Below, piece by piece: positions 44 to 53,165 of a stretch of 64,000 nucleotides of DNA. Where the stretch lies: assembly GCA_040285825.1 (NCBI GenBank), contig JAUPSS010000008.1, forward strand, positions 806,001 through 870,000, in the 5' to 3' direction. Origin of the DNA: Eukaryota sp. TZLM1-RC (Eukaryota; Protista; Metamonada: BaSk clade). Position numbers and translations under genes: made by a program. The notes beneath the pieces are model-generated. The model made no database searches, had not been told where the DNA came from, and worked only from the letters and a program-made list of their open reading frames with translations. Positions within the stretch are counted from its first letter, which is position 1. The number at the start of each line of letters is the position of its first letter.

Positions 44-115
44 GTTCTCGTGGCGCAATGGAAGCGCATCAGCCTCCGGAGCTGAAGGTTTCGGGTTCGA
101 ACCCCGACGGGAACG
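44..115 (+). tRNA. tRNA-Arg(CCG)
   Basis: Cloverleaf: acceptor GTTCTCG/CGGGAAC, D arm GCGC..GCGC, anticodon arm TCAGC-CT CCG GA-GCTGA, T arm TCGGG-TTCGAAC-CCCGA; followed by a TTTT Pol III-type terminator. Confidence 0.95.
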
Positions 116-2149: not shown

Positions 2150-2222
2150 TACAGGCACCGGGGGTTGAACCCGGGACCGCCTCTGTGTGAGAGAGGCATC
2201 CTAACCACTAGACCATGCCTGT
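2150..2222 (-). tRNA. tRNA-Val(CAC)
   Basis: Minus-strand cloverleaf: ACAGGCA/TGCCTGT acceptor, A73, anticodon arm CCTCT-CT CAC AC-AGAGG, T arm CCGGG-TTCAACC-CCCGG; followed by a T6 terminator (A-run at 2144-2149 on +). Confidence 0.92.
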
Positions 2223-2360: not shown

Positions 2361-2929
2361 GGGTCACTGTTTTTCATAAACTGTTTTATACATTTAATAC
2401 CAATGAATGAAACTTTCTTGTTGGTTGTAATGTAATGTGGGCTATCAGTGAAAAGTCTCACAAGCTCAGTATTTCATATTGATTGTTGAAAGTACAATGA
2501 TTTGTTTGATATTAATAATTCGAATCTAAAATGTACAAAACAAGAAGTTCAATGTAAACGCCCTCGAATCAGCGTTCAAAGTCGGTGTTTTGGTGTTTCA
2601 AAATGAATTTAATTTTTGAAAAAATAATTAAAATTAACAAATATTTTATTAAATTAGCTTCAGTTAAGACTTTCATCGTCAAATGGGCTTGTAAAGGGGA
2701 AAGTTAATTTTAAAATGGACCTTGATTCTGAATATATTGCAAAGTATTGGAAGGTTCATGAAAATGATCCCTTCTCAGATTTTTCCTTATCCCAAAGAAG
2801 AACTGTAGTTGCGGTTTATTGTTTGAGCGATACAGATTTAACCATGAAATTCTTTAATCTTTTTTAACAATGACCAATTCATGGAAACTGTTAACCATAA
2901 ACCTTATGATGGTTATAAGGACAACATAA

Positions 2930-4607
2930 AAAATGTCATCATAGATCCGAAAATGATTGACGTGATCGATGAGGCAGTAATTAGGTGTCAGGAGATTTCT
3001 ATTGTTGATTTAGAATTCATTTGTGGTTATTAATTGCATCTTTTTGACTTAAACCCTAATGATAATTAACCAAAAATTGAAACGCAATTTCTTCGTGACC
3101 TTTTTATTCAGGTCACATCTCAAAATGAGGAGGAAAGTTCTCTTAACCCAAAGATAAAAACAGCTTTGCAAAATTCTCTTTGTGCGCCATTGATGGTATT
3201 CTATCACCAATTGACAAATTGATTGTGAATTTCTGAAATAACAGTCAAGAGCATTACTTTAACTGCTTCGATAGATTTGTTGATGTTTTCTATGATGCTA
3301 AGAGAAACAACAGCGTTCTGAAAAAACAGGATAAGAAAAACTTATCATTTATCAGCATAGATAAATTTCTCCTTCTACAAGGACGTAGAGATATTGATGG
3401 TAAAACATCTGCAATGAGAAACAAAGTCTCATCAATTGCTTCGCTTTTCATCAATGACCGGACCCCTCTTTTACTTTCCACTAATTCCAAAAGGGAAAAG
3501 TATTTAAAATTTGATTTTTCGTCAAAATCAAATTTGTATTTGAAAGCAATGTTTTATATTAATAATTATTTAGAAGATGAGGAGAGCAAACTCTTTCACG
3601 CTCTGCCTTTGAAGAATTCTTGTGTTCACTCGTATATCAGAATTGACAAGACAAGTTTATTGAACTTGTTCTTTAACGAATTCAAGGACATTCTTGGTCA
3701 AAAGTCGGCTTATAAATTTGATGATCAAAAGATGGGTTTGTTCTTATGGAACACCATTTTGAAAATGGACGAGATTGAAAACACTAAACTTTATTCAGAA
3801 GATTCAAAATACATCATGTCTAGCATCGAGACTGATGGAATAGCAGTATCATTCATTCAATCTAGAATTGACTTGAAAAAACTCAAGGTAACTGCAAAAG
3901 AATTGAAAGATACAGAAATCTCAAGAAATCAATATTCCCCACGAAATTGATTACTCATTAAATTTGAGAAATAATGAACAAAAACTAAATCTGTAGGAAG
4001 ATGGGAAGCAACTTTATCCCAATTCAATTCCAAAAGCTGCAGATTTGACACATTTAGGGAGTATATTAAACAAAAGAATTTTGTGAATAGTATTGTTGGT
4101 GAAGTCTATCATCAAAATTTTTTTAGGAAACTAAGATGGTGGGCTGAGATTAATCGCACAAGATCTGAGGCAAAGATGATTCAGAGCTTCAAATCAGTAA
4201 TTGGTGATCCCCGCCAAGTAGTTGTCGAAATTGGAGAAAGGGAACAACGAAAACACATGAAATTCAAAGAACCTACCAAAAGAAAAGGTTTGAGAATTCT
4301 GTTTAAGAAGGCTGGTTATAAGGTCTTTTAACTGATGAGTTTCGAACCAGTTGCGGTTGTTTCAATTGCAAGAAAGCGGAGAAAATAGTTGAAACATTTC
4401 GATAATGAAGAAAACCCTGGTCATGGAAGAGGCATGAGATGTCGATTCGTCACGGGCTTACCATGTGTAAATCATGCGAGAGATCGAAATGATTCGCTGA
4501 ATATGTTGGCAGTGATGGAAGCACGTGTAAAAGGTGGAGAGAGACCGGAATACCCACACAGAGTCAAGGTTGGTGAAGGTTCAAAGAAAATATTCTCAAA
4601 AACTTAG
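2930..4607 (+). pseudogene. Fanzor1 (eukaryotic TnpB-like RNA-guided nuclease) pseudogene, family F1
   Basis: Ordered motifs across broken frames: FHALPLK..YIRIDKTSL, SIETDGIAVS, FRKLRWWAEINRTRSEAKMI, IGDP..VVEIGE, KFKEPTK..GL..LFKKAGYKVF, DEFRTSCGC..C, HGL..C..C, RDRN..LNM, GGERPEY. Multiple stops and frameshifts; the RuvC-I DPG region is not recognisable. Confidence 0.85.
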
Positions 4608-4662
4608 TCCCTCTACATCAGTGTAAAAAGAACACTTATTTCATTGTTATAGACATCATCTG
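4560..4662 (+). ncRNA. Conserved Fanzor F1 right end / candidate omega-RNA scaffold, abutting the ARL6 ATG
   Basis: GAAGGTTCAAAGAAAA...CTCTACA..TGTAAAAAG.ACACTTAT..CATTGTTA.AGACA..ATCTGT is shared with 6420-6540, 18775-18875 and 19874-19924; RNA function is inferred from the position at the Fanzor 3' end. Confidence 0.5.
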
Positions 4663-4668
4663 TAACAA

Positions 4669-5242
4669 ATGGGCTTCTTATCTTTCCTAAAACGTGCTTT
4701 TGGTGTTCAACCTCCTTCTGGGCGAGTCTTGGTATGCGGTTTGGATGGTGTAGGCAAGAGTTCTATTCTGTCTTTCATGAAAAGTGATCCAAAAGACAAT
4801 GTTGTAGTTCCCACTGTGGGCTACTCTTTAGAAGAGTTTTCTTTCAATGGTTTTTCTTTTACGGTTTTCGACATGTCTGGCCAGTCTCGATATCGTGACC
4901 TGTGGGAGCACTATATCAAAGAATCACAGGCCATTATCTATGTTATTGATGCCACAGATAAGCTACGACTAGTAGTAGCAAAGGATGAATTAGCTAATAT
5001 TCTACAACATCCAGACCTTAAGAATGTACCATTCCTTCTGCTTGCTAATAAAATGGATCTCCAAGAGGCTTTAGCTCCCTCTGTCATAGTCACAGAGATG
5101 AATCTTTCACAGTTGCTGTCAAGTAGAAACTGGCATATAAATGGCACTTGTGCACTTGATGGAGGTTTGTCTCATCTAATTACTTACTGCAGATGGTCTT
5201 GATTCGGGATTTTCTTGGTTAGCTGATCAACTGCGGTCGTGA
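4669..5242 (+). CDS. ARL6: Arf-like small GTPase, ARL6/BBS3-like; 2 exons (4669-5164, 5193-5242)
   Basis: GLDGVGKS, PTVG, FDMSGQSRYRDLWEHY (ARL6-type), NKMD, TCA. Removing a 28-nt intron (GTTTGT..CTAAT..TGCAG, 5165-5192) restores the GDGLDSGFSWL Arf-type C-terminus. Confidence 0.85.
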
Positions 5243-5722
5243 TACGTTTGTTGGAAGGTATTTCTGTATTTTTATATTTTTTGTAGATTGGTCATAAATT
5301 ACTTAATGGGACGTATTTATTTGCTTGCTTCAATAGGACTAAGTTTTATTCTTAATTTTACCTTACTAATCTGCTACAACTTGTCTTTGCAAAAGTCTCT
5401 GATGTAAGCTATACAGATAACGCATTATTGATGTGATGGTTGCATGTGGTCGAAGGACTAGTAGATAAGTCTGTAAGAGATATAGATAAAAGAGGTGTTT
5501 ATAATGAGTAGGTGTTAGCAGAATAGCCGCTATAGTAGTAATTTTGTTTATAGTTCTTTAGTGAGTACATTTTTGAGGAAAAATATAATTCTTTCTTCCG
5601 TTTCTCTTTGTATTTCCACTTGTTATAAACACGTATTGAACCTATGTCATACAACTCGAGCTCCCAACGTTCCAAGGCTGTGTTAACATAGGGAGAAAAT
5701 TCAATGCAATAATACTATACAA

Positions 5723-5811
5723 TATCGCGTTTCCTGAAATGTTGGGCGATTTGGGCCATTAGCAAACAATCGCCCAATAAAAAGGTGCCCCACATTTTAG
5801 GAAACACGGTA
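5723..5811. mobile_element. Tiny Tc1/mariner (pogo/Tc2-like) MITE
   Basis: Imperfect inverted repeats of about 25 bp (TA-TCGCGTTTCCTGAAATGTTGGGC / GCCCCACATTTTAGGAAACACGG-TA) flanked by TA; internal hairpin TTGGGCGATT/AATCGCCCAA. Confidence 0.65.
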
Positions 5812-6209
5812 TGGTTGAAGTTTATATTTTGACGATGTGAAAAATGTCTTGACAGGCTGGAAGTTATCAGTAACAAAAATTGCAATTTGAAGAAGAAATC
5901 TCCAGTTGGGGAACAATCTTCAACAACCTAGACTTAAATAATGATATTCATGGTCAGAATTATAGATTTATTTTACAATTAATTATTGTCTTGAGGTAAT
6001 TTGCAACGAGTGAACACCCCATGCACTACTGTGATGACCTCATGACGAAATGGTTTTGAGTGTTACCTTCAACTATGATTGAAATTGGACAAGAATCAAA
6101 TTGAGTCACTGCGACATGGCACCATGTGATAACTTCAGGGCTAGGAGCCAGCTCATTGATGATTAATGAAACTACTTCAGCAAATCGTCATGTCTGTTTT
6201 AATTAACTT

Positions 6210-6540
6210 CACAGCTATACATTCAAACAGTTAAGGCTGATGCTGGTTCAACAAAAAGACCAGGTATTAAGGAGAAAAAAATCTACAAAGACAACATCAA
6301 AGTCTCGAATTCTCTCTTATCGGTTTATATTTGTAAAAATATGCCGTTGTGATGACGGAATAATATAAATAAAAATTAATAGATGATATGCACGACGCTA
6401 ATATAACTATAAAAATACAGAGAGCCAAATTCGATGAAGGTTCAAAGAAAAGGAATCAAGGAGAAAATCTTCCAAAATAGTCAGTCTCTCTACAACGGTG
6501 TAAAAAGGACACTTATTGCATTGTTACAGACAATATCTGT
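6210..6540 (+). mobile_element. Two tandem Fanzor F1 3'-end remnants (about 6210-6306 degenerate; about 6415-6540 well conserved)
   Basis: Peptides YIQTVKADAGSTK and IQRAKFDEGSKK match the F1 C-terminus YPHRVKVGEGSKK; 6436-6540 aligns with 4575-4662. Confidence 0.7.
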
Positions 6541-6544
6541 CAGA

Positions 6545-7417
6545 ATGAACCCAAATTCTCAGTCTGTTCAGGACGTAATATCAGCTGCTGATCGACTACT
6601 TACCTCCTTGCGGTCCTCACAGTTATCTTACCCTTCTAAAGTGGAACCCACTGCAGCTCCTCCCAGACTCGTGTCACAACTCATCGATTCGTTGACTTCT
6701 GCCAATGATTTCATCAACAGTTATAGGGATTCGCTAGCCCCTTGCATCGAGCACCCAGAGAATCTCCCCATACCATTTCCACTAAGTTTACCTCCTCAAC
6801 ATCTGGTTTCTTCCGTAGAGGAAGGCGCTGGGTTTAGCGAACTATGTAACATTACCTACTCTTTATTTAAGTCCGTTACATTCTTAAAATTCACAACTGA
6901 TGCGAAACTTTCAGCATTATCTAGATGCAACAAGAAAACTCAAAACGAAAATTCTTCACTTAAAACACAAATAAGAGAACTGAATGAAGCCTTGGACGAA
7001 AAAGATAAGGAAAAAAGACATTTGGAATCTGTTCATCAATCAAGTAGAAGAGAAATTAAACATGAGGTTACCGAATTACGAAATCTTTATGAAAATCACT
7101 TATACAAACTTAAACAGCAGCTGGAACAAACCCAGCTTGAGAATTCAGAGCTTGTGAATAATATAGCTGAGTCAGAAAGGGTTAGAAGAAGTCTTGAAAG
7201 TGATGTTGCAAAAGGTCATAAAGAAATCGACTCTCTCAGACGGGAACTCTCTTTTAATGAACAAACGAGAGCTCAACTTTCTAAAGAAGTCAATCTACTT
7301 CGTTCAAAGCTAGCTTCTCTCAATATTGATCCTAATGAAGATTTCTCTTTTGGGGAAGAAGATTTATCAAAGTCAAGTCTTTGTGAGCACTTCTCACGGC
7401 ATGGTTTGGATTTGTAA
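6545..7417 (+). CDS. Hypothetical coiled-coil protein (about 290 aa)
   Basis: Long ORF with a heptad-rich C-terminal half. Start moved to ATG 6545 because the first 37 codons of the predicted ORF are Fanzor right-end sequence. Confidence 0.75.
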   Translation: MNPNSQSVQDVISAADRLLTSLRSSQLSYPSKVEPTAAPPRLVSQLIDSLTSANDFINSYRDSLAPCIEHPENLPIPFPLSLPPQHLVSSVEEGAGFSELCNITYSLFKSVTFLKFTTDAKLSALSRCNKKTQNENSSLKTQIRELNEALDEKDKEKRHLESVHQSSRREIKHEVTELRNLYENHLYKLKQQLEQTQLENSELVNNIAESERVRRSLESDVAKGHKEIDSLRRELSFNEQTRAQLSKEVNLLRSKLASLNIDPNEDFSFGEEDLSKSSLCEHFSRHGLDL

Positions 7418-7465
7418 TTTAATTGTAAAATAAAATAAGTAGGAAAAAAGTTTTTATTTACATGG

Positions 7466-9124
7466 TCACTCTAACGGTATTGGCTTGACTATACCATTAT
7501 CAAGGACCTTTTCTGACTTTTCATGTGATTTCTGATTGGTTTCCGGAAGTTCTGTACCACAAAACTCAGCTAATCCTCTAATAAGGATGCTTAAATCACC
7601 TAATAAGGGACGTTCCTTTTTCAGAAGTTTGTTTTCTTCTAATAATTCAGAATTTTCAACGCGAATTGAATTCAAGTCTTGGCATAGTGTGGAATTTTTG
7701 GTAAAAAGTTCATTTTCTCGGATTGTCAATCGATCCACATCATCAGTGAGCTGTTTTTTGATTGACTGAAGATCCGTGACATGCTGTTCTAAAATATTGG
7801 CCTTGTCACTCAACCTTGACAATTCACTTTTTAAATCTGCTATTTCATGTAAAGAATTCTTTAATTTAGATTGATTTTCCTCAAGTTTTGACTTCAAAAC
7901 TCTATTTTCTGAATTTAAATTCTGATTTACAACTAAAATGTCATCAACATTTCTGGTATTGGCATTTAAAATTTTGAAATTTTGAGCAGCTCGCACAATA
8001 ACATCATCGACTAACTGATAATGATCTCCTCTCTGCCCCTGCGAAATATTGGAACAAGAGAGGCGTAATACAATTTCAAAACAAAGAATATTTAGTTCTT
8101 CCCCTTTGGAAATTGGTAAATGTGGAGCAAGAAATTTAAATATTTCCTGAGAAATTTCCAAGGTCAATGGAAAATAACAAACTTGCTTCAAAATACTTAG
8201 GACAGTTACCAAAACACTAGGTTCTTTGTATAGAAATTCCACTAAAATGTTTAAAAATTCAACACTTTCGGATAAGAGTTCAGCAATGGCATTTCTATTT
8301 GTTTTTTCAACCAGAAATTTTATGCAATCCAACCAGCAAAGTTGACTAGCCTTGTCAAAATGCTGAAAATTTGTCAAGAGAAGGTTCAAAGTGTCGATAA
8401 AGAGATCAGGTTGGAAAATTTGAGCCAATTCGACACCCAACACACTAGATTCAACAATCAAACCCTTGATTGATTGATTAAGCAGGTTAAAAACTGTTTC
8501 CTCTTTCACACTGCACTTATCCACAAGAATTGCATCCTTAACCAGACAACAGAAAAACTTCATCAATAAAGGCTCTTCCCTAAACTCAAGCTCGTCCAAC
8601 TGAGCAACTACCCCCTTTACCACACTAGAGTTGGAAAGAACACATGAGGGAGAGAGATCGTACACAAGTTTTAGTATTGAGCAAACGTTGGAAGGAGAAC
8701 AGTGGAGATGTGGTATGGAGTGAGAGATTATGGGAGAGAGGGTGGATGACGGTATGTGGGAAGAAAATGAGGTTAGTATAAGCAAAGAATGATCAGAAGG
8801 AACGTGTTTGATTGCAAGATTTAATAAATAGCTAGTAAGTTCTGAGGGAATACAGGTAGGGTCCAGTTGAGAGGTGGCGAGAGAAATGGGAGCAAGACAT
8901 AATGAAGAATTAGGTATTGAACTAAGCACAGAGAGGACTTCTATAAGAGAGTTAGCTGAAAAGGAGGAAGTTTGAAGCAAGGGATATAGCACATCAAGGC
9001 ACTGACTAAGATCCGATTCAGAGGAAAAAGATTTCAGCTTGTAAAGTAAGGTAGTAAGTAACTTACTGGCTTGTTGCTCCGTGAGAGGGAAAAGAGAAGG
9101 GAGAGCATTAAGCAGGTCAAGCAT
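7466..9124 (-). CDS. Hypothetical protein, helical-repeat-like N-terminus and C-terminal coiled coil
   Basis: 552-aa ATG-started ORF; Leu/Ser-rich helical region followed by a clear coiled coil. Confidence 0.8.
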   Translation of the reverse strand: MLDLLNALPSLFPLTEQQASKLLTTLLYKLKSFSSESDLSQCLDVLYPLLQTSSFSANSLIEVLSVLSSIPNSSLCLAPISLATSQLDPTCIPSELTSYLLNLAIKHVPSDHSLLILTSFSSHIPSSTLSPIISHSIPHLHCSPSNVCSILKLVYDLSPSCVLSNSSVVKGVVAQLDELEFREEPLLMKFFCCLVKDAILVDKCSVKEETVFNLLNQSIKGLIVESSVLGVELAQIFQPDLFIDTLNLLLTNFQHFDKASQLCWLDCIKFLVEKTNRNAIAELLSESVEFLNILVEFLYKEPSVLVTVLSILKQVCYFPLTLEISQEIFKFLAPHLPISKGEELNILCFEIVLRLSCSNISQGQRGDHYQLVDDVIVRAAQNFKILNANTRNVDDILVVNQNLNSENRVLKSKLEENQSKLKNSLHEIADLKSELSRLSDKANILEQHVTDLQSIKKQLTDDVDRLTIRENELFTKNSTLCQDLNSIRVENSELLEENKLLKKERPLLGDLSILIRGLAEFCGTELPETNQKSHEKSEKVLDNGIVKPIPLE

Positions 9125-9130
9125 CTGATT

Positions 9131-9260
9131 CTGAGAATTTCACACAAAGTGAATATTGAATAAATATCTCTAATAATTGTGTAAACTTCTCAGCACCAAG
9201 GGTTAGTATACACTAAACACCTTGGAAATACGTTGATTAAAACAGATACTGCTGTCTTCT
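9131..9260 (-). ncRNA. Structured RNA candidate (omega-RNA-like) between the Fanzor F2 stop and the host ATG
   Basis: Hairpin CCAAGG..TTAGT-GTAT-ACTAA..CCTTGG (9196-9225) and a 16-bp stem CTGAGAA-TTTACACAA/TTGTGTGAA-TTCTCAG (9131-9193) ending 6 nt before the ATG at 9124. Confidence 0.5.
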
Positions 9261-11060
9261 TAGACGTCTCACACGCCTTGGCCTTCTGAATGGTTCTGGC
9301 CTAGTACCAGTGAAATACTCACTAATTGCAATCTCCAGCTGGTTTCTGGAGGCTGAGATGTCCCTAGATCAGTTGGTCTGACATCGAGGGCAATCGAACT
9401 TAGTGTTATTTACCCTTCCGTCATCATGATAGATCTTTCTATGAAAGTCCTTACAGCAATTCACTTTTGCTGAGGTCATAAACTCATCCCGACTTTGACG
9501 CTTTCAAAGTGTTTTTTTTTTGATTTGTTTGAGAAATCTCTTTCGGGGGGATTTCACAGATTGACCAGAAGGACCTCCACCACCATTGCCGAACCATACT
9601 ATAGTGTTTCTTCCTTCAGACAAGCGTTTAATTTTGTTAATAAAACTAGTTATTCTCTTTTGCCTTCGTATGAGGAAATCAAACTTATTTCTTCTAAGTT
9701 TTTTTTCTTACATCACGCTGCAAATTTCCAGAGATAGTTGAAGCATATTCAGGCTCTTCCTCAGATTCAGGAACATAAGGTAAACTTATTTCAATCAGAT
9801 ACTCTTGGAAGCTCTGAGCGGAATAAGTGTTAGGAGTTGCTTGAGTCAGAGGAGGAGGGTGATTTAGTCTTCGTTCTTTTGGATTCAGTAGCAGTCCAAC
9901 ACGTTCAAAAACAGTAGCAGAATTTTGGAAAGAACCAGCAGTGTTAACCACAAAGATTGCTGTGGTTGGGATCAATGGCTACAAAAAACAAATTTTCATC
10001 AGGATCTCTGTAATTGGGCTGTCGTTCCACTGGTAACCGCGATCTTCGTTGTGGATTTGCTTTTCTATGGACATTGGATTTTCGTTTCCTTTCAGCGTTA
10101 TGAAGATCATAATTTCCAGAGGCTCGCCTGGGCTCAAATTCCGTTTTACATGGCTTAATATAAGTTTTTCTTTCCTTCTGGGTAAACGGAAACCGCAAGG
10201 AATCACCATTTGAAAAAATTGTGTAGTTAATAAATTTGGATTTATTAAAAAACCGATAAGGGTTGTTCAGAAGCTCTTTGTTTTCATTTAGCTTTGTGAA
10301 ATAAGCTTCTGCTTCTTTAATCAAGCTGCAGAAGCATGGAGACCAACTGGACAGTGGAGAGAGAGTGTGCCTTTTCATCACATCAGGGAAGTTATCTTCT
10401 AAAAAGGTAAAATATTCAAGACAGATTAAAAGATTGTTGCTGCAGACTCCATACTGATGGGGAATAGTTCGTTTCTTATTGAATTTTGAACAAATTTTCA
10501 CCACCACCAATATAGGCGTTGGCTGTCATATTGAGCCAATGGACCAAGATTTGCTGGTGTATTTCTTGATACCATTGCAAAATTGACTCATCTGGCTGAA
10601 TCAATTGAAGTACACAGTCGGCGTACTTCTTGGGCCAGGGGCAATTTAGAAATTGAGCACAGCCCTTGAAAAATTGCGTTTCCAGACAACAAAACCGTCA
10701 GCGAGCAACTGACAAAAGACTTCTCGCAGATGGATGGCTCGACTGCCAAGAAGAGTGGCAAGACACCAAAATCCATCACCGTCGGCTGAGGTGGTTTCAT
10801 TCAGCGGTCGCCAGGGCCAAAAGTGCTGAACAAGGTGTTGCAGCGCTTGGTAAACCAAAGGATGGTTCTCAAATGGCCTCCTTTGTTTAGGCTCACTTTG
10901 ACAAACAAAGTCGAAACAGAGGCTCCAGCATGTGCCTCTGAGTCGAAAAACTGGTTGACCAACGCTCCCACAGTTGTAGTTTGTAGGACGTTATCCATGG
11001 CCGTCAACACAGTCGGAAACAGTCAGAAATGATTGAAAATTTGTTTCCTAAAATTGACAT
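9237..11060 (-). pseudogene. Fanzor pseudogene, family F2
   Basis: IFSNGDSLRF, FFVAIDPNH (RuvC-I), DEFMTSAKVNCCK (RuvC-II and Zn), CPRC..SRDISASRNQL (RuvC-III), GTRPEPFRRP; clearly homologous to 50070-51066. The 5' boundary (10510-11060) is tentative. Confidence 0.8.
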
Positions 11061-11297
11061 TTTGTTGAAATCAATCAATTTTATAGTTGTCAATTCAAAA
11101 TAAAGTTAGTTAGAAGTGTTTATTAATGATACATATCGTTCAAGATTGCTTTCTGAATGTTTTCCTTTCCTCAGACAAGAACTACATGCTGCAAAAGTTG
11201 GTTAGTGGAGTTTGGTTGGGTTGTCATCATTCCCCAGATTTGCAATTGAATTTCATTTCATCACTTATACCTTTCGTTCACCTTTAGTAATTTAGTT

Positions 11298-11505
11298 TTG
11301 ACTAAATTTTCATCTTCGACAACCTCCCCTTTTGACTCTCGACAACCTGGAAAACCTTCAGTAGTTGCATCTCCATTTGGTCAACAGACAAGTCATCCTT
11401 CTACAACAGGAGCTTTTAAGGCTCAGAAAATTGGTCAAAGTTCAGGAGGTGTATCGTCTTTTGGTCAAGGAACAAACCCACCTTCTACTACAGGAGCTTG
11501 TGTCC
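11298..11505 (+). pseudogene. FG-repeat (nucleoporin-like) fragment
   Basis: SPFGQQTSHPSTTGAF...SSFGQGTNPPSTTGA duplicated unit; no ATG and a short ORF. Confidence 0.35.
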
Positions 11506-11779
11506 GACATCTTGTGTCCGAATGGCTTTCTTTCTATGGGTCCGACAATCTGCTTCAGTTCTGAAAGCTGAGGCCGCTCTACAAGACACCTTTTCCGGAG
11601 ATGATCTCATTTCAACCTATTCGTTGAAAAGTTCACCATCTGAGCTTCGTGGGATGTAGATTCAAGAAATCAATTTTTATTTATTTTTAATTTTTTGGAG
11701 CTTTACTGTGTATTAACATCTTCCCAAAAGTCTTCTCTCTCTGCAGCATCAATTGTTGATGATCAACTATGTTCTTCTG

Positions 11780-11950
11780 TTGAATATGAATATGGGAATA
11801 AGTAATATTGTAGAAATCAATTGCACTATTGTTATCTCTCTTCCAGTAGATGCCACATTCACTGTTTTGACAGCGTAGCAATCTATGACAGGTAACCCAT
11901 TTTGCCTTTTGTTCCACTTTTTCAAATTCTCTCTTTTTCCTTGGGTTGGT
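11780..11950 (-). pseudogene. Fanzor C-terminal remnant
   Basis: WVTCHRLLRCQNSECGIYWKRDNNSAIDFYNI = H.LL.C...C...W.RD.N.A.N (Zn finger and RuvC-III). Confidence 0.75.
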
Positions 11951-12244
11951 CTAGTTGTTTGTTCAGTTCTTCTTTCTTTTCTTTCTTCCTTTTCTCATCC
12001 TGCTCATCATGAATATAAACATTTCAATTTCTTTTCTTAACACACGAATATCACTGTTGATTTCTCTATCCATCTTCCTCTTGCTTCTTACATAAGCATT
12101 TGGATCAGGTACTTATAACTTGCTCATCGTAATACCTTTTCGATCATCGCACGCACATTGCACGCAGTATTTCTATATTCATCTATTAAATATAACTTGA
12201 AACTAGCCTTTCGTAACGTTTTTCGTTAATGTACAAAAGATCAA

Positions 12245-12850
12245 TTTTACACAGGGCTTCTCTTATTCTATGTAAGAACTGATGCTGTTTGTTTGTTATG
12301 GCAAATTGAATTCGAAAGCGCCATAAAAAGATATCGAATCTCTTCATTGTTCTTTCTTGAACCATTTTTTGGAAACATTCAAAAAGGTTCTTGCTTCTAC
12401 TGATAGTCTTCCGTTTATAGCAAATGGGAAAGCAAGAAAAACAAGTGGTCTGTTTCTATCAGCATTAGCTTCTTCAATATATCTGTCATATTTTCCATGT
12501 TTCTTTTTGGCTTTAAATTCAAGAGCTTCTACTGGATTAAGTTTTCTTCTTAAATGGAATGTGCTATTTGCAATACTGCAGTAGACAAATTTAACAACAA
12601 CTTCAAAGTTATCAATCCAGTCTTAGTATACATTACCTCTGTCGTCAGAACCAAAATTATTCAATGATAGTGTTTCTTTCAGCAGAGGCTTTTTGACACA
12701 CGAAATTCTTGCATTTCCTGCCATACTGAAAACAGTGTCTCTAACAGCATCATGTAATGAAGATCGATAAGTTATCAGTTTGTAACAATTCAGAGCATGA
12801 CGCAAAGTGAGCTGTGGTGAATTCGAACAAGTACATTTTTCTTTAACTAC
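12245..12850 (-). mobile_element. Diverged family-A RLE retrotransposon fragment
   Basis: LRHALNC.KLITYRSSLHDAVRD..SCVKKPLLKETLSLNNFGSDDRG; has stops; older than neighbouring copies. Confidence 0.85.
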
Positions 12851-12984
12851 AAGTTAAAAAATCATCTGGAACTGAACAATAATACTGAGCTGTTGGACGT
12901 AAATAGTGCATTTTGAACAGTAATATAAGTTTTGAAAAGAGGTCTAATGTAAGATTTAGTTATACAACATTACAATAGCTATTG

Positions 12985-13839
12985 TATTTATTGAATTTGC
13001 ACACTTAATTAAATTAACTCATAACTAATGGGACGACTATCATTGAACCAAGATTTTCTCTACAAAATCTTGATCTGTTTGCTGTCTAGCTAAAGCTCCT
13101 CTTATTCGATTGAAAAACCTAGGTAGTCTATTAATAATGGCAAGTTGAATTCGAGAGCGCCATAAAAAATTATCAAATCTTTTCATTGTTTTTTCTTGAA
13201 CCATTTTTTAGAAGTCACTCAAAAAAGTTTCTGCTTCAACTGATAATCTTCCCTTTATCGAAAATTGAGAAGCAATAAGAACTGGTTTTGTATTTCTACC
13301 AGCTCTAGCTTCTTCAATATCTTTATCACATTTTCTATGTTTTTCTTTTGCTTTAAAATCAAGAGCACTTACAGGATTAAGTTTTCTTCTGTGAACCAAA
13401 GTATTATTTGCAACATTACATGAGACAAAGTCAACAATAGCTTCAGAATTATCAATCCAATCACAGTATACATCCCTCTATCATCAGAACCAAAATTATT
13501 CAGAGAAAGTGTTTCCTTCAGCAGGGGCTCCTTGATACACGACATTCTTGCAGTTTGTGCCATATTGAAATCAATGTCTCTCATAGCATCATGTTATGAA
13601 AAACGATAAGTTATCAATTTAGAACAATTCAGAGCATGGCGCAAAGTGAGTTGAGGTGAATTCGAACAAATACATTTTTCTTTTGATAATAATTGATTAA
13701 TGGGGATGTTCAAATATAATCTCATTTTTGTTACATTAGTGGCACACAATCCAAATCTTCGTGGTACAATGGTTACAAAAAGTGAAGAATCTGATGACTT
13801 GTTTTCACAAACACCCTTTTCCAACAACAATGAGTGTTG
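12985..13839 (-). mobile_element. Family-A RLE retrotransposon, 5'-truncated, with 15-bp TSD
   Basis: TTACAATAGCTATTG is duplicated at 12970-12984 and 13840-13854; contains CICSNS..HALNC and the RLE motifs. Confidence 0.9.
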
Positions 13840-14078
13840 TTACAATAGCTATTGATTTAACAATATTAATAGTATCGTCATCCAACCAATTAAAAGTTTG
13901 TATCTTATGACTCATCAGCCAAATTTTGCATAATTTCAAATGAACTTTTCTGAACTGGCCTTCTTTTGGTAAAATACTAAGGTTTAATCGAAATAATCAG
14001 CATGAGGTGATTGATTACACCAAAAGTAAAACTAAAACTAAATCAGAGTAATATACACTTTATTATCACCATCCTTGT

Positions 14079-15008
14079 TCACCTCCTAATAACTGTTCTT
14101 GGAGTCCTTGGAGTTCTGATTAAAGGACAAGTTTGTGGTCTAGGAGTATCTAAACGATTAATTAATCTTCTACTACCACTATTGTTATAATAAGGCAAAG
14201 CATCAACAAATCTTTTTGCAATCTGTTGGTGTCTAGTTTGTTTTAATAGTTCCTTTTCTTCTTTTATTTTACGCTCATTCTTCATCTTTACTTGAAAAAT
14301 CATATCTTTGGCTAACACAGCCTTAGAAAGTGCCAACGATTCGAATAACATTTCCTGTTTGCTGTTGGTAGGCTTACTATTCACTGAATTAAGTTGCAAA
14401 GAATTACTCAGCCCTTCTCGTCTAAGTCGACATATATTACCCCGGGACTTAAAAACTGCTACAACATTTATAACAATCCAAAGCTTCCTCCAAACCTTTC
14501 TACGCCTCATTGGTGTCAACAAAGATGCCCTTGACTTCTTTGGGCTGGATGGAGGAGATGCGATCACAGACCAAGATCGTTCCTTAAAAGCTGGAGGAAC
14601 GAACGGTCTGACTTTATGAAGGGGCCGGGCAGAAGGTGGATTTGAAGGTGGAGGGTTAAGGACATCGATTATAGGTCTTGATGAGATACGAGCTGAATTG
14701 AGACGGGAAATACGTGTAATTCTGGGTGAAGGGACATTAAAAGGAGTACTTGGCTGACGCGAAAGTGGTTGGTTGTCGTTTTTACTATTTTGTAAATCAA
14801 GTTTGGGTATTGAGGGTATAGGATTTGTTGAAGGTGTACTTGGAGGTTCAAGTTCAGATTTTCTGTAACTGTCAAATAAATTAGTCATTGAGCTTTGAAG
14901 TCTGAGCCTCGAACGAGAATACTTTTTATTTGTTTGATTAAGATGATGGATGTGAGACTCAAGTTGAACTGTTGTACTATCGATGGAAGTAAGAAGTTCA
15001 TTAGACAT
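14079..15008 (-). CDS. Hypothetical basic Pro/Ser-rich protein
   Basis: 309-aa ATG ORF; RRKVWRKLWIVINVVAVFK resembles a calmodulin-binding-type amphipathic helix (inference). Confidence 0.7.
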   Translation of the reverse strand: MSNELLTSIDSTTVQLESHIHHLNQTNKKYSRSRLRLQSSMTNLFDSYRKSELEPPSTPSTNPIPSIPKLDLQNSKNDNQPLSRQPSTPFNVPSPRITRISRLNSARISSRPIIDVLNPPPSNPPSARPLHKVRPFVPPAFKERSWSVIASPPSSPKKSRASLLTPMRRRKVWRKLWIVINVVAVFKSRGNICRLRREGLSNSLQLNSVNSKPTNSKQEMLFESLALSKAVLAKDMIFQVKMKNERKIKEEKELLKQTRHQQIAKRFVDALPYYNNSGSRRLINRLDTPRPQTCPLIRTPRTPRTVIRR

Positions 15009-15105
15009 CAGCTAATAGCACAAAAATGGCAAAAAGTGGTAACCTGTTGAGAGTACTGGAATATGAAGATGAAAAGAATCGAGTTGCTGGTTTCAAAACT
15101 TGAAG

Positions 15106-15701
15106 CAATGTTAGAATTCCGAACGTTCGCAACCCTTACGAACGTTCGGCCGAACGTACGCCGAACTAGTTTTTGTTCATTTACACGTGTCAACACAGTT
15201 TTGTTTAAAAATGTTTTCCCAAATCCCTATTTCAACTACTACAATAGATTTCACTGTTTAAAAATCTGTATTCATAGATAAATCCCCTTCTTTACATCAA
15301 CTTTCTTCAATGCCAAAGCACCCTGTTTACAAACTTCTAGACAACGTTAATTACGATAAAGTGTCCAAAAATATTACTTCACAGTGCCGCTGCTGCAGTA
15401 AGATGCTAAAAGGTTCAGCCCGTCGCTTTTCCTCCCATTTCATTAAGGAGTATAGAGCTGGATATGCCTTATGTACTCAATTATCCACCATTTCTGTCAA
15501 GGATATAAACACTGTCCTAGGTTAATGACCTAGATTTAGATGTTGTAGAACTTTCTGAATAAAAGTTTACTTTGTTGGTTGATAGTGAGTATAATAGTAT
15601 AGGGAAGGAGAAGATAAACAGCGTTTTGATATTAATGAATCAAAACGAGATACCGAACTAACCGAACGTTCGGCCGAACTAGTTCTGTAATTCTAACATT
15701 G
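15106..15701 (+). mobile_element. Non-autonomous hAT DNA transposon (internally deleted), both ends intact
   Basis: 13-bp TIR CAATGTTAGAATT/AATTCTAACATTG; perfect 8-bp TSD ACTTGAAG (15098-15105, 15702-15709); subterminal CCGAAC repeats; BED-finger-like start MPKHPVY..CRCC..GSARRFSSH..C at 15310-15525. Confidence 0.92.
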
Positions 15702-15709
15702 ACTTGAAG

Positions 15710-16460
15710 TCTTTCTACTACATGAATCATATCATGAACAGCATTGACTCTACAATTCCATAGACATCCACACTTCCTGCAAGTGAGTAATCCATGTCTA
15801 AGGACCGTTGGAGTCTTTGCTCTCCTGTAAGGTCTTTGGTTAGGTACTCGATGCTTCCTTACATTTTCGCCTTCTTTTCCCTCGAGTACACATGCATGAC
15901 ATCGACAACTTGTTCTATATTCGTCCAGCAGCAATAGACGTAAGTTACGTTTTTTAAACATCTTTCGATAAGCAACATTCTTTGTAGGGGCTTGGTGTTT
16001 AAAATTGGTTTGCTTGCAATCAACCATCACTACAATATTATCTTCTGGACGTCCAAACCTATTTTCAAATTCATTCATCCATTTTGCTTCAAACCTCTCT
16101 GTGGCCCTGAATCTTCGCAGTTTCATAAATCTTTGTCAAAGTAAAAAGCTCCAACATGGAGAGAAAAGTTGTTTTTTGCCTTGCAGTAATATATGAATAC
16201 TTCATGATCTAGAGTTTTTTTTTGAAAATTTTTTAATTCTTCTTCCCATCCCTTTACAGTTTTGTTTTGATAAATCTGTGATTCTTTGGCATTTTTATAG
16301 AATTTTTGATGGTCTTTGTTCAGAGTTTCGCTTCTCCTTTGAGGAGCAGTGAGCCTCTTGAATTCCTTTAGTTTTGCTTTATTGTTTTCATTTGCAGGAG
16401 GATTTTGTTTTGGCCTGAAGTCTAGAATCTTTTGTTTTGTCTTTTTGTTTTTTTTCATTC
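15710..16460 (-). pseudogene. Fanzor1 pseudogene (3' half)
   Basis: LKEFKRLTAPQRRSET, KLRRFRATERFEAKW..FG.PED..VVMVD, KHQAPTK, LLDEYRTSCRCHAC, HGLLTCRKCGCLWN; cut by the hAT at its 3' end and by a retrotransposon at its 5' side. Confidence 0.88.
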
Positions 16461-17240
16461 TGTTGTTTTCTATGGCCAAACAATTTGCCCAATCATTCGA
16501 TATGTAATAGTGGCAAACCTCTTTTGTTTTCTCATCTTTTTAACTGTAGACATTTTTTATTTTTAGAAGTAAAATACATAATAATGTCAGGGACCAAATT
16601 TATGTAATGTGTAAATCATATCGAGTAGATTCCTTTTTAGAGCCTTTGTTATCAAAATTAATTCTTAATGACCCCAATATTGATAGTACGCGCTACAGCA
16701 GAGCTTCTATGGATCTGAAAAAAGGTGACTTGGTTGTTTCCGGCTTAAATGGTAGTTTCACTATTTTAGACGCCATGTCCTTGACCCTTGTAATTCTTTT
16801 AACGAACATTTCATCAACTCGGATGTAAATAATCGTCTTCTTGCTGGCGAAAAATATAAAATTGCTAAATATGCGAAACCTGTTTCTTCTGTTAATGAAA
16901 ATTCTCATGTCCAATATAATTATGTCCCTTGGCTTTTTCCTTGCTTGGATCCTTAGGTAAGGCTGCTATGGCTTTCCTTGAGGACTTTGATGTAGTTCTA
17001 AAGGAAAGAACTGGAAGATTTTTTAATCGTGTTTACCGGCAAAACAGGATTGTATTTTCTATCCTTAAGGGAATGGTGAAATTAATTTCTGAGTCACTCT
17101 CTTCTTTTGGTAAATTTTCTGAATCTTTGGCAATTAATTGTTTTGATGTAGGGGAATCAGGTTTTGAGGATGTGGAGCTTTAGTTTTGTATTTGATTATT
17201 TTATTCTTTATTTGATCAGAAACGCTTTTGTAAATAAAAG
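16460..17240 (+). mobile_element. Family-C RLE retrotransposon, 5'-truncated, frameshifted
   Basis: Near-identical to 28985-29745 and 44660-45280 (MCKSYRVDSFLEPLL..GDL..ILDAMS..GEKYKIAKY..QNRIVFSI). Confidence 0.88.
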
Positions 17241-17409
17241 TTCTGTCAATACGACCTCTATTTCTTCCTTTGTTTTCTTAATGACGCCATTCGTCCCATT
17301 CTACTCTTAAATATGTTGGGGTTGAGTGTGGTTCAGTTAACATTTTGGGATTTGGGCAATTTAATTTCCCGGACATCAATTGGTCCCTAATCCCAGGGTC
17401 AATTACTGT

Positions 17410-17700
17410 GAAGCTAATATTTATCAGCTCATCTCGTGAAATTTCAGTCAAGTACGGATCCTTTTCACCTTCCTATGGCTTCTTAAAGAAACTCTGCCCT
17501 GCTTTATCTTTTCTCATAAGGTGTAAGGAGCAACTTACACCATCAGTCCTTATGGAAATTTTGAAACAGTAATCTTGCTTTTCAAAAGCCCTTTTACTTG
17601 TTGGAAAAATCTATTTCTAATATTGATGTCAGAATTTTCCAATATTTCCTCCAAGAACAGTTTCAGAATTTCCCGGGTAATTGGATTCATTTGGAATCAA
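17410..17700 (-). pseudogene. Fanzor1 middle fragment (possibly the upstream part of the 15710-16460 copy)
   Basis: IFPTSKRAFEKQDYCFKISIRTDGVSCSLHLMRKD..PYLTEI, the conserved Y.F..I.TDG.S block. Confidence 0.7.
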
Positions 17701-18334
17701 AACTATGTAAATTACCTGTGTGTCCCAGAAAGCCCAGGTATTTTAGAGATCTGAAGTGGAAATAAATTTTTCTTAAATGGAAATGTCTTTGGCAGTTGCA
17801 AATAGCAACTTGCCCTATATGAGCAGAAACAACAGCCTAAACATTTCAAAGAATCATCCATTAAACTATATATATTGTATTAAATGTATTAAATTAAACG
17901 CAAATATACCGTTACATTGGGTAAAAATAAATGTAGATTGTGAAATAAATATAAAGTTCTAGCCAACAATAACTGTTTCAATTCATCAATAAGCTGGTAT
18001 TGACTTGGAACATGTTTTCAGCTTATAAAAGTATCAACTGAAACAAATCTGATATGAACAGATGAATAGAATCCCTTTCGAAGAAGTTGAATAAAGGTTC
18101 AATAATATATGGGAATTCGCAAAAAAACTCATTCAATTGTGTTTGACAGAAATAAAGGTCGAGAAATTCATTCAATAATTCTTTGAAGTTATTTTTTACT
18201 GAAAGTGCAAATGAGCAAATGCTAATCTCAATAATTTGAAACACTATATTCTGTGATCCTTTCCATAAATTGAGGATATAAATTTGGAACCCCTTCAGGT
18301 ACTGCATGAAAATAAATTTTTTTGGAAATTATCC

Positions 18335-18490
18335 TTAACTTTGTTGAATTGGAACAAATACCTTTTTCTTCTGATAATAATTGATTAATGGGGATATTCA
18401 AATATAATTTCATTTTTGTTACAAACGCTTCATTAGCAGCACACAGTCCAAATCTCTGTGGTACAATGGTTACAAGCAGTGAAGAATCTT
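18335..18490 (-). mobile_element. Family-A retrotransposon internal fragment
   Basis: DSSLLVTIVP..FGLCAANEAFVTKMKLYLNIPINQLL matches 13660-13800 and 44540-44647. Confidence 0.75.
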
Positions 18491-18719
18491 TATTGAGTCT
18501 TTATTGAATATCAGATTTAGATAAAGTCATTCCCAATTTTGGGTACATCATCATGAGCATTAACCCTGTGAACTTGACGAATTTCAGTACTAATGGATTT
18601 TATTAAAAGTACTATCGAAAAACGATCCAATGTTGCGGAGGGTATTATGGTTACAGGATAGAGCTAATTCATGAATTAATCGAACGCATACTGCATTGAA
18701 CACATTGACGGTGAGGGAA

Positions 18720-18875
18720 CCTCAATAATTGATGGAGAAATGCCTGAATATTTACAAAGATGGATTGGTATTGCAAGTTCAAAAAAGGAATCCCATGTAT
18801 AGTGAGGAAAAAAACTCAGTTCTGCAAACATTAGCACTAAAGGACACTTATTCCATTGTTATAGAGATTATCTCT
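18720..18875 (+). mobile_element. Fanzor F1 C-terminal remnant and right end abutting the NOP16 ATG
   Basis: SIIDGEMPEYLQRWIGIASSKK resembles GGERPEYPHRVKVGEGSKK; then AAAGGACACTTATTCCATTGTTATAGAGATTATCTCTACGA-ATG. Confidence 0.72.
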
Positions 18876-18879
18876 ACGA

Positions 18880-19344
18880 ATGGTGTCGAAACCCCGTAAA
18901 AAGCATCCCAAGAAAGTAGCAATACAACATCCTCTTTTGAAAAAGCACTATGATCCTAAGCGTACTATGAAGCAAAACATGGCAAAACTTGGACTTCAAG
19001 TTCGTCCAGGTGCTATTCCCAGCCAAAAACCTACTGCTGTTAGTCTTGGTAAGAAACCATCTCAGCCCCCACAAGAAATTGAGCAATCGCTTTTTACTAC
19101 TCCTCCCTCTGCAACGCCTCACAAAATTATGCCACCTGGCGATGTTTCGTTTGTTGAACGAATGGTAAAGAAACACAAACTTGACTTTGCAAAGATGTTC
19201 CGTGATATAGACATTAATGTTTACCAGCACACAGCAACTGTTATCCGTAAAAAAATAATTTTATTTGTCAGGTTGTTTCCAGAAAGGGCTGCTGAACTGG
19301 GAATTCCGACAGAAGTAGACCAAATTCCAGAAATTGATTTTTAG
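18880..19344 (+). CDS. NOP16: Nucleolar protein 16
   Basis: YDPKRTMKQNMAKLGL and MVKKHKLDFAKMFRDIDINVYQHT motifs typical of Nop16. Confidence 0.85.
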   Translation: MVSKPRKKHPKKVAIQHPLLKKHYDPKRTMKQNMAKLGLQVRPGAIPSQKPTAVSLGKKPSQPPQEIEQSLFTTPPSATPHKIMPPGDVSFVERMVKKHKLDFAKMFRDIDINVYQHTATVIRKKIILFVRLFPERAAELGIPTEVDQIPEIDF

Positions 19345-19476
19345 TATTTATATAGTCATTTTTTAGTTGTATAGTTAATAGTACACTTTTAAATAAATTA
19401 ATTTATCTACCCATAAAAGAATTTCCAAAAGTCTCTTATGGATCATTATGTGTACATAAGCAATGGGATCAAAAAA

Positions 19477-19776
19477 TCACTGAGAATAAGTGAGAGGTCT
19501 ACGGAACCTAGAGTTAACTAACAAGGATCGCAATACAATAGAATATGGGGCTCGGGCTTATGGATTGCAAAGTGTTCCCAACCACGGGACTGGCGGACAC
19601 CAAGACGGCGCCATTCGGCCTCGGTCATAAGACGATCTCTTGGGATACGACTAGCTGCTTCCTTGGTGAGGACTACATTACTGAGATGAAAGACCGATCG
19701 TGACCACATACCGATACTCATAATGATCATCAAAGTACTTATTGGAGTAGCGAGATACAACAGTGTCAACGTCCAT
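19477..19776 (-). CDS. CKS1: Cyclin-dependent kinase regulatory subunit Cks1; 3 exons
   Basis: YSNKYFDDHYEYR|NVVL..LMTEAEWRRLGVRQSRGWEH..HKPEPHILL|FRRP. Introns 19681-19711 (31 nt) and 19508-19536 (29 nt) restore the canonical sequence. Confidence 0.95.
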
Positions 19777-19873
19777 ATTGAAGAAAGCTAAATGGTAAGT
19801 AACACAAACGTTTTCACCCCAAATTCCAGATTCAATCGAGAAAACCAACAAAATCATTAATCGTTCCCACAAA

Positions 19874-19924
19874 CTCTACATCATTTCAAAGGGCATTTAT
19901 ATCGTTGAAGCAGAAAAGATCTGT
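19874..19924 (+). promoter_or_regulatory. Degenerate Fanzor F1 right-end motif inside the 152-bp CKS1/SSU72 divergent promoter
   Basis: CTCTACATCA (10/10 with 4611-4620), then 25/37 ungapped identity to the AAAGAACACTTAT...ATCTGT block, ending just before ATG 19929. Confidence 0.5.
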
Positions 19925-19928
19925 GCCA

Positions 19929-20507
19929 ATGGCCAATTTGAAGATTGCTTTAGTTTGTTCATCAAATCAAAATAGATCAATGGCTGCTCATGAAGCTCTT
20001 GCATCTTCTGGATTTGACGTCTACTCTTATGGAACCGGGATCAGTGTTAAGCTTCCAGGGCCTTCTCTAGAGGAGCCTGTCGTCTATGACTTCGGTGTTT
20101 CTTACCAAAACATGTACAATGACCTCAAGAACAAGGACCCTGAGCTGTATGCAAGTAATGGTGTTCTTTCCATGCTTGAGAGAAATGCAAAGATAAAGCC
20201 TGCACCCGAGAGGTTTTTAAACTGTACTGTTGATCTTGACATTATTATCACTTTTGAAGCACGTGTTTTTGACCAAGTCTTGGATTTCTATTTCAATCGT
20301 CCAAATACAGCGATGAAACTCTTACATGTATTTAATCTAGAGACTATGGATACCCACACTGACGCACAAGAAGGTGCCAGAAGAGTCTCTGAACTTGTAC
20401 GAATGTTATCAAATTCTGATCTCTGTAATGACTTGGGCAGTGTGCTCTCGGAGTTTGAACATCGTGCAAGTTCCAAACCTTTGCTTTACACCTCTTGTTT
20501 TAGTTGA
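19929..20507 (+). CDS. SSU72: RNA polymerase II CTD phosphatase Ssu72
   Basis: VCSSNQNRSM active site, SYGTG..VKLPG, LERN.KIK.APERF, DTH..A..GA. Confidence 0.95.
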   Translation: MANLKIALVCSSNQNRSMAAHEALASSGFDVYSYGTGISVKLPGPSLEEPVVYDFGVSYQNMYNDLKNKDPELYASNGVLSMLERNAKIKPAPERFLNCTVDLDIIITFEARVFDQVLDFYFNRPNTAMKLLHVFNLETMDTHTDAQEGARRVSELVRMLSNSDLCNDLGSVLSEFEHRASSKPLLYTSCFS

Positions 20508-23661: not shown

Positions 23662-23744
23662 TAGTGAAGAAGGTTACTTATATTCAGGGTTAGGGAAATT
23701 CCCATAAATACACGATCAATTTTCGTGTGGAATAATTACAAAAA

Positions 23745-52589: not shown

Positions 52590-52894
52590 AATTGATAGTA
52601 GATTTGACAGAGATGTCTAATATCAATCACTTTTGATAGTTCAAGGCTATACATTTTGTTTCAACTTTTGCTTTCGCTACTCGTGATAATGCAATGCGCT
52701 GAATCGGACTCATTAGTGTACCATAACTTTCAGGATCTTTTCTCAACAGCTCCAGGCTTTCATCAATTTCATCATTCAATAACTTTGAATGGTTTCTATT
52801 TCTAATTAGCTGGTACTTTCTAATTATTTACTTTTTCTCTATCGCTAGTTGTCTTTATTCATACTTACTGATAACTGTCACTGTGTTTTCTCTT

Positions 52895-53165
52895 AGACAA
52901 GGTAATTGGCTTTTCTCTAGACCTTTTCTATAATTGTACCCTTAGATGGATACTAATACTACTTATATTCTTTACCACAATCACCAATCAGTATAGTGCA
53001 GTCACCAGGATCATCAAAATTTGGTTTAACTTTGTAAATTAACCTCATGTCGGCTTTGCTGTACCTTTTGTTCAGACAACCTTTGATTTTGTTAATGTAT
53101 TTGGTTAATTAAATTCCAAGTGTTCGGTCTTAATTAATCTTTTACTTTAATATATTCACAAAATC
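52895..53165 (-). pseudogene. Fanzor1 internal remnant
   Basis: EYIKVK..KIKGCLNKRYSKADMRLIYKVKPNFDDPGDCTILIGDCGK..PSKG..RKANYLV parallels the KFG.P.D..ILIGD.G..PT.G..K.GY.V block of other copies. Confidence 0.6.

Follow-up and report, generated by a model that had tools for sequence, protein, structure and literature searches.

In the genome of the metamonad Skoliomonas litria, the right ends of a Fanzor1 element family, here termed family A, are docked a few nucleotides before the start codons of host genes, and this start-codon docking is real and genome-wide. It was analyzed in a stretch of 64,000 nucleotides (the window) on contig JAUPSS010000008.1 of assembly GCA_040285825.1, to which the SSU72 protein maps, and at further loci. 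The source of the assembly, Eukaryota sp. TZLM1-RC, is S. litria (PMC11603281), whose genome measures 31.9 Mb and is 55% repetitive (PMC11316075). This free-living inhabitant of soda lakes belongs to a lineage that is sister to Fornicata. The reading that we favor, with about even odds (probability roughly 0.5), is that a remodelled Fanzor1 element uses short base pairing to insert, in place, at start codons, probably via RNA copied by host retrotransposon enzymes, and that its end then acts as promoter or leader.

Family A right ends at start codons

The original prediction, made from the letters of the window, had described four related blocks a few nucleotides before the ATGs of ARL6, a coiled-coil gene, NOP16 and SSU72, the last being more degenerate. 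The blocks were found to end at positions 4663, 6540, 18875 and 19924, which leaves 5 nt to the ATG of ARL6 (4669) and 4 nt each to those of the coiled-coil gene (6545), NOP16 (18880) and SSU72 (19929). An nhmmer profile was built from these four copies, and leave-one-out scoring within the window yielded E-values of 2e-10, 8e-11 and 1.5e-6 for ARL6, the coiled-coil gene and NOP16 and of 0.014 for SSU72, the weakest copy. Weak alone, the SSU72 copy obtained 39.8 bits against a profile of ten copies, itself included. A fifth family A copy was not detected by nhmmer in the window.

Additional loci (L-numbered) were chosen via Fanzor proteins, independently of the right-end motif, and all family A counts cover the window and these other S. 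litria contigs, ~190 kb in total. On the other contigs the profile recovered seven further copies, and in each case a gene's ATG comes after four more bases. Six of the copies lie at called starts, while the ATG at L003 lies within a merged gene model; the hosts include epsin, ApbA and a WD40 gene. All 11 copies end 4 nt (once 5 nt) upstream of a host ATG and are co-oriented with the gene, and none was found away from an ATG or in reverse orientation. As gene starts occur only about once per several kb per strand, chance placement is excluded. Distance and orientation to the ATG, which the prediction had proposed as a check, are thus sharply set at -4/-5 with no scattered copies, and the proposed precise insertion at start codons is borne out. 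Copy density amounts to three in ~126 kb of unselected loci and four in the window, and extrapolated to the 31.9 Mb of the genome, this is roughly several hundred to two thousand copies. Some Fanzor end sits just upstream of 8 of the ~17 host genes in the window.

The blocks are derived from the element, as had been claimed: at ARL6 the C-terminal peptide of the Fanzor continues into the block, and decayed forms of it were found at the coiled-coil gene and NOP16. No peptide remains at SSU72, where the right end has outlasted the open reading frame (ORF), again in agreement with the prediction. Family A copies are 83-93% identical and have a common 3' end and different 5' starts; the 5' ends differ even between copies at 97% identity. 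In every copy the last 25-55 nt are kept, and the sequence upstream is lost or interrupted in at least six. Later insertions have split the right ends of L007 and L009 ~90 nt from the ATG, the terminal part staying in place. Divergence between young copies is 2.5% in the last 40 nt compared with 9% in the 90 nt upstream and 4.8% in the ORF. CKS and SSU72 lie head to head 152 nt apart, and the SSU72 copy takes up most of this gap. Two ends are stacked before the coiled-coil gene (6215-6540), with a family B fragment at 6155-6200.

Docking could also arise with no precise targeting, if elements landed near promoters and selection kept those ends that lie at a gene-driving distance. The variable distances (10-80 nt) at which families B and E end would fit this explanation, as would the persistence of ends beyond decay. 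However, young copies with long ORF remains are likewise all at -4/-5, none of the 11 copies lies in the neutral junk that makes up more than half of the genome, and the +4/+5 bias is specific to the family. Selection among imprecise landings is therefore very unlikely to account for the pattern.

Ancestral terminus and loss of the omega-RNA scaffold

Broken ORFs were searched in pieces or with X at stops. What is left of the ORF upstream of ARL6 was identified as Fanzor1, and the D-E-D motifs are intact in the best-preserved relatives. The Fanzor proteins P0028 and P0179 score above the cut-off for PF07282 and contain the DPG, DEF and NRD motifs; the RuvC D-E-D residues, the Glu near the zinc finger and the TnpB C-terminal domain expected of Fanzor1 are all present. 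In the protein tree (the family B row was out of frame and was ignored), the family A Fanzor groups with Fanzor1-type proteins of eukaryotes and giant viruses. Its closest relatives outside are Fanzor1 proteins of giant-virus and metagenome contigs (40-56% protein identity), among which family A is nested. The L007 copy extends upstream into remnants of a PolB 3'-5' exonuclease and an Ulp1 protease. Homologs of the exonuclease-Fanzor fusion were Skoliomonas proteins only among the matches listed, and the predicted structure of the exonuclease region has a pLDDT (predicted local distance difference test) of 34.

A set of 38 giant-virus and metagenome Fanzor elements was used for comparison. Inverted repeats of ~30 nt, whose end reads GGTGTAAA, form the boundaries of these relatives, and one viral element (L026) has an adjoining DDE_3 transposase. 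Inverted repeats at both ends with a TA duplication were found in the viral relatives and not in family A. In the relatives the right terminus is paired to a sequence 74-91 nt upstream, and compensatory variants are present; such pairing is in line with a Fanzor1 scaffold in which the duplication is included (PMC13565253). This scaffold duplex has 7 of 8 pairs in 23 of the 38 relatives (null ~10%) compared with 4-5 of 8 in family A, where the homologous terminus lies ~40 nt before the ATG, 8 nt are missing and the upstream partner is gone. In 27/38 relatives, the best match to the family A 16-mer coincides exactly with the end of the element. They are undocked, with an ATG within 6 nt in 1/38, and the downstream gene is on the same strand in 39/70 viral cases. 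The exact right-end motif had no match in viral and metagenome contigs. The giant-virus Fanzor1 elements at L013-L118, with inverted repeats, a covarying scaffold duplex and a predicted TTTA-like target-adjacent motif (TAM), are candidate active systems.

Judged by its sequence, the family A element descends from giant-virus-type Tc1/IS630 inverted-repeat elements but is devoid of their ends. With the giant-virus Tc1/mariner (IS630-like) Fanzor1 elements it has the terminal 16-mer, the RuvC triad and the zinc finger in common. In contrast to them, its right repeat is broken and internal, the scaffold duplex is lost, and Ulp1 and PolB-exonuclease domains as well as start-codon docking have been added; a left terminal repeat was not recovered, and no DDE transposase was found in the family A copies, all of which are truncated. 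Since the ancestral terminus maps ~40 nt upstream and viral ends are undocked, the final 36 nt are best regarded as a later Skoliomonas addition to the ancestral element end. The ancestral guide position would consequently fall on constant, element-internal sequence in family A. Most simply, the extension would be the region upstream of a founder gene, its leader or promoter, absorbed into the mobile unit.

Compensatory variation in the stems of the block, another part of the prediction, was not recovered. Two-sided changes at paired positions were at the level of shuffles (2 observed, 1.6 expected; 257 of 500 shuffles), RNAalifold returned no compensatory pairs for the family A copies, the block folded no better than its shuffles (z -1.4 to +2.0), and the NOP16 hairpin is a register shift and not a compensatory pair. 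A structured omega-RNA duplex closing before the guide was not found in family A, where the scaffold may instead be remodelled. The prediction had named random placement, a bare promoter motif and missing covariation as results that would speak against it; the first two were not seen, whereas covariation was indeed absent.

It had further proposed that the host leader plus start codon serve as guide, and that trans-acting guides act against host genes. The former is doubtful, as the ancestral scaffold end lies ~40 nt upstream with its duplex lost and the first eight bases of a guide taken from the junction would pair with the element's own arm; for the latter no support was obtained. An extended form of this model places the RNA end at the junction; the guide consists of host leader and first codons, and Fanzor cuts similar starts, which are then repaired from the element (ectopic homing). 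The D-E-D RuvC triad kept in family A would be in line with this, as would 10 nt of flank common to the two closest copies and five pairs with an identical 4-nt spacer (p 0.06). Apart from the displaced scaffold end and the sequestered guide seed, several findings argue against it: spacer identity is unrelated to end identity (rho -0.04, p 0.54), and inheritance of the 4-nt spacer by lineage is not supported; no fixed or TAM-like motif was found upstream of host ATGs; the RuvC-III residue is Asn in families B and R; and Fanzors cut far from the TAM, not at the junction (PMC10530073). We consider ectopic homing quite unlikely.

Alternatively, the last 36 nt could be a pre-existing host core promoter common to many genes, to which Fanzor homes with a constant guide. 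Indeed, the ancestral guide position reads directly into the extension, and the position relative to the ATG is fixed, like that of the Spironucleus promoter motif (PMC3916229). However, all 11 copies have element sequence upstream, and no bare extension lacking it occurs in the ~190 kb. The family A end is also absent upstream of the SSU72 orthologs and in ~110 kb of two sister species, and 97% identity over 36-40 nt exceeds the expectation for a promoter motif, which makes homing to a host promoter highly improbable.

Terminal hairpin and mode of insertion

The terminal hairpin crosses the junction, and its arm complements, in register, the surroundings of the start codon. The arm has the sequence CAT, TGTT, ATAGA, for which TCTGT, the spacer of four bases and the ATG are the pairing partners; at L007 an unbroken helix of 14 pairs is formed. 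Because four arm bases stand opposite the spacer, the 4-nt spacing is matched. In 8 of the 11 copies, the fold of minimum energy is the hairpin over the AUG, and 86% of cells were paired compared with 34-44% when slid. The A at -1 predicted by the arm is present in 11/11 copies (background 12/38), and so is the predicted purine at +4 (11/11 versus 24/38, p 0.014), a position that belongs to the host coding sequence, e.g. the Gly2 codon of ARL6. C/G-A precedes the ATG in all 11 copies and in 4 of 31 other genes (p 3e-7). In the SSU72 copy, the oldest, three changes fall at paired positions and the pair is kept in all. In family D, which is an unrelated Fanzor, the arm is GACAT, and the host genes begin with ATG-TC in 3/3 cases versus 2/49 elsewhere (p 4.5e-4; three copies only).

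The short target context has 634 sites in 190 kb, yet only gene starts are occupied. Sequence context alone is thus insufficient, and exposure of the target where genes start must be required as well. In Skoliomonas sp. RCL, head-to-head genes at locus L002 are 21 and 31 nt apart (210/232; 19936/19968). Given these gaps and the short leaders of Giardia, a member of the sister clade (mostly <20 nt; PMC3792122), transcription probably starts close to the ATG. New copies would be joined in place when the 3' end of the element pairs with single-stranded sequence exposed at transcription starts.

Insertion appears to have occurred in place, since ARL6 keeps its apparent intron and several copies fill head-to-head gaps; a processed retrocopy was rejected on the same grounds. 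A spliced-leader or intron model was likewise rejected, given a junction without splice acceptor and ends that are kilobases long. A precise 3' end together with 5' truncation, as in a passenger similar to retrotransposons lacking long terminal repeats (non-LTR retrotransposons) or short interspersed nuclear elements, was found. At ARL6 the 11-nt repeat is exact and its left copy lies 20 nt before the left boundary (p 0.0016, ~0.013 after eight tests), and a long interspersed nuclear element in L007 has a duplication of similar length. In families B and R, the exonuclease is preceded by a 2A-type DVEANPGP motif at their start; 2A-type motifs are known from non-LTR retrotransposons (PMC3708506). 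The ARL6 repeat and the 2A motif in B and R suggest reverse transcription in trans, and most likely the element RNA would be copied by enzymes of host non-LTR retrotransposons. In R1Bm and SART1, annealing of RNA to the target by short pairing fixes precise 3' junctions, with variable 5' truncation (PMC7265360). Those elements, which have genes for a reverse transcriptase and an endonuclease of their own, insert into a single repeated sequence, whereas family A targets unrelated single-copy genes with no reverse transcriptase on the element.

The same junctions could be formed at the DNA level, by a single strand made by rolling-circle replication or a helicase that pairs with the coding strand at an open promoter, followed by strand transfer, for which the Fanzor RuvC fold might be responsible while the exonuclease trims the ends. 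Such a route would be expected to give a precise 3' end bearing a terminal hairpin, along with variable 5' ends, and complementarity of the arm to the coding strand also accounts for orientation. The full-length element of Skoliomonas sp. RCL has a superfamily 1 (SF1) helicase, and Helitron2-borne Fanzors show variable 5' truncation (PMC10312701). An HUH or Rep domain was, however, seen at no locus (none of the family A copies is full-length), the helicase was found in the RCL family alone, and the 11-nt duplication fits staggered nicks better. Docking through DNA is for these reasons an unlikely route.

Several observations weigh against pairing-directed insertion through reverse transcription. 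Among eight copies tested for duplications, one was clear, one marginal (p 0.058) and six absent, so that duplications are not consistent. No reverse transcriptase belonging to the element was found, the nearby reverse transcriptase genes being separate insertions with their own duplications, and a poly(A) or A-rich 3' tail is absent at every end. A 2026 review has no retrotransposon-borne Fanzor (PMC13565253). Conservation of the extension is not significantly above that of the ORF body, two-sided covariation of arm and target was not detected, the G at -2 (6/11) is unpaired with the arm while a wobble-capable T never occurs there, and copy L010 has no arm. The related RCL element with SF1 helicase is undocked at called ATGs. 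The match of arm and target could also be a fossil of the founder site and not an active targeting device.

After insertion the retained end would most likely supply promoter or leader to the host gene, so that host genes survive and the end outlives the ORF. Exaptation as promoter or leader is plausible from position, the element occupying the promoter place of conserved genes; closeness to the ATG could instead protect the end passively. Fanzor itself would be cargo or helper and not a guide against host genes.

We tentatively raise a wider proposal, which falls short of even odds: a new class of eukaryotic element with an anti-start-codon arm that inserts at the ATG with base precision, retargets by change of the arm (family A compared with D) and has replaced promoters or leaders of hundreds of genes; the joining may be carried out by the exonuclease-Fanzor fusion. 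Insertion fixed relative to transcription starts and tolerated by the host occurs in Ty3, Tf1 and Dictyostelium TRE5, through protein tethering to transcription factors and with base precision only at RNA polymerase III genes. To our knowledge none of these is fixed to the ATG of protein genes. Element-internal sequence selects the target by pairing in group II introns (exon- and intron-binding sites, EBS/IBS), IS200/IS605 (guide tetranucleotides) and IS110 (bridge RNA). The likeness is in logic only, as family A has no ribozyme, TnpA or recombinase.

Systems that carry TnpB or Fanzor are closer in layout. In restorative homing by OMEGA systems, a nuclease gene is likewise followed by a conserved non-coding right end (PMC13565253), but homing restores a copy at its own site and makes no new insertions at a class of host sites. 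The Helitron2-borne Fanzor of Chlamydomonas has a conserved 3' end, variable 5' ends and many solo copies of the RNA region (PMC10312701); start-codon docking was not reported there, and RepHel was not found here. Our literature search returned no described element fixed to start codons of protein-coding genes. The parts, Fanzor1 and a Tc1-type end, are thus known, while no precedent was found for start-codon targeting. If targeting is by short base pairing, it would amount to a programmable rule of insertion that occurs naturally in a eukaryote and would give Fanzor ends a new role, and large-scale promoter replacement would be implied. It would also allow a direct test of the role of Fanzor RNA once restorative homing is irrelevant.

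Other Fanzor families and gene neighborhoods

The coordinates of the features are collected in Table 1.

Table 1. Fanzor elements, their ends and adjacent host genes in the window.
Feature	Position	Strand	Remark
Candidate left copy of 11-nt target-site duplication	2680..2690	+	repeat at 4666-4676 over ARL6 ATG
Family A element, 5'-truncated and internally deleted	2711..4663	+	PolB exonuclease remnant end, broken Fanzor1 ORF, right end
Fanzor C-terminal peptide continuing into right end	4539..4607	+	ARL6 copy
Relic of ancestral right terminal inverted repeat	4607..4627	+	ARL6 copy; 8-nt internal loss
Putative derived 36-nt extension	4628..4663	+	hairpin 5' arm 4639-4653 pairs across junction with 4659-4672 including ATG
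ARL6-like Arf GTPase gene	4669..5202	+	native Met-Gly start; apparent 28-nt intron 5165-5192
Older decayed family A-like end	6215..6350	+	stacked upstream of newer one; read from sequence, below profile threshold
Family A right end	6402..6540	+	4 nt before ATG; repeat relic 6484-6504, arm 6517-6530
Coiled-coil gene	6545..7417	+	
Family C Fanzor remnant	9131..10510	-	well-folded end 6 nt before ATG 9124
Family D Fanzor element	15009..16479	-	interrupted by another insertion; end abuts ATG at 15008
Decayed family A right end	18713..18875	+	4 nt before ATG; arm 18851-18866
NOP16 gene	18880..19344	+	
CKS gene	19477..19776	-	divergent from SSU72
Most decayed family A end	19830..19924	+	arm 19901-19914
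SSU72 gene	19929..20507	+	
Family B Fanzor, 722-aa ORF	23693..25913	-	RuvC-III Asp -> Asn; ends 31 nt before ATG 23661
Family E remnant	52619..53060	-	ends ~29 nt before ATG 52589

Co-oriented ends before an ATG were also found for families C (6 nt), B (10-80 nt) and E (29-60 nt). This looks like a general promoter preference among the families, to which A and D added base precision. The end of family C (9131-9260, minus strand) folds far better than its shuffles (z -3.5) and is a better candidate for an omega-RNA than that of family A. Family B (window, L003, L008 and L010) is fused behind a 2A motif and the PolB exonuclease. One family B copy lies inside a family A end (L008 9477), and an inverted copy of an internal Fanzor segment is located near the family B 5' end in the window (24110-24273, 25952-26115). 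An insertion whose inverted ends lie near 15160 and 15680 splits the family D element (region 15100-15700).

Of the two copies of one family in Skoliomonas sp. RCL, one has its end 3 nt before an ATG. A young RCL family of 14 members combines a divergent SF1 helicase, of the Upf1 type, with a 2A-exonuclease-Fanzor (L004 6056-13670; L002 9546-13665; L005). The L002 member is internally deleted and has a 10-nt repeat ~20 nt beyond its left end, an arrangement that matches the one at ARL6.

Pfam supports the ARL6-like, NOP16 and SSU72 assignments, with native N-termini. Neither synteny nor a common insertion at SSU72 was found in two sister species, and no empty site was readable there; gene order near SSU72 differs across three Skoliomonas genomes (L001, L011, L012). 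An Rfam scan of the window returned only two tRNAs, and a bacterial promoter scan, whose model is inapplicable to this host, gave no match. Fragments of retrotransposon 3' ends (116-2149) lie between the tRNA genes at 44-115 (plus strand) and 2150-2222 (minus strand). By eye, the ORF at 43536-44009 (minus strand) resembles bacterial ScdA/Ric iron-sulfur repair proteins and was possibly acquired laterally. A gypsy-type LTR retrotransposon occupies 55062-64000 and contains a 2-kb inverted duplicate with 99% identity (58985-61014 versus 61970-64000).

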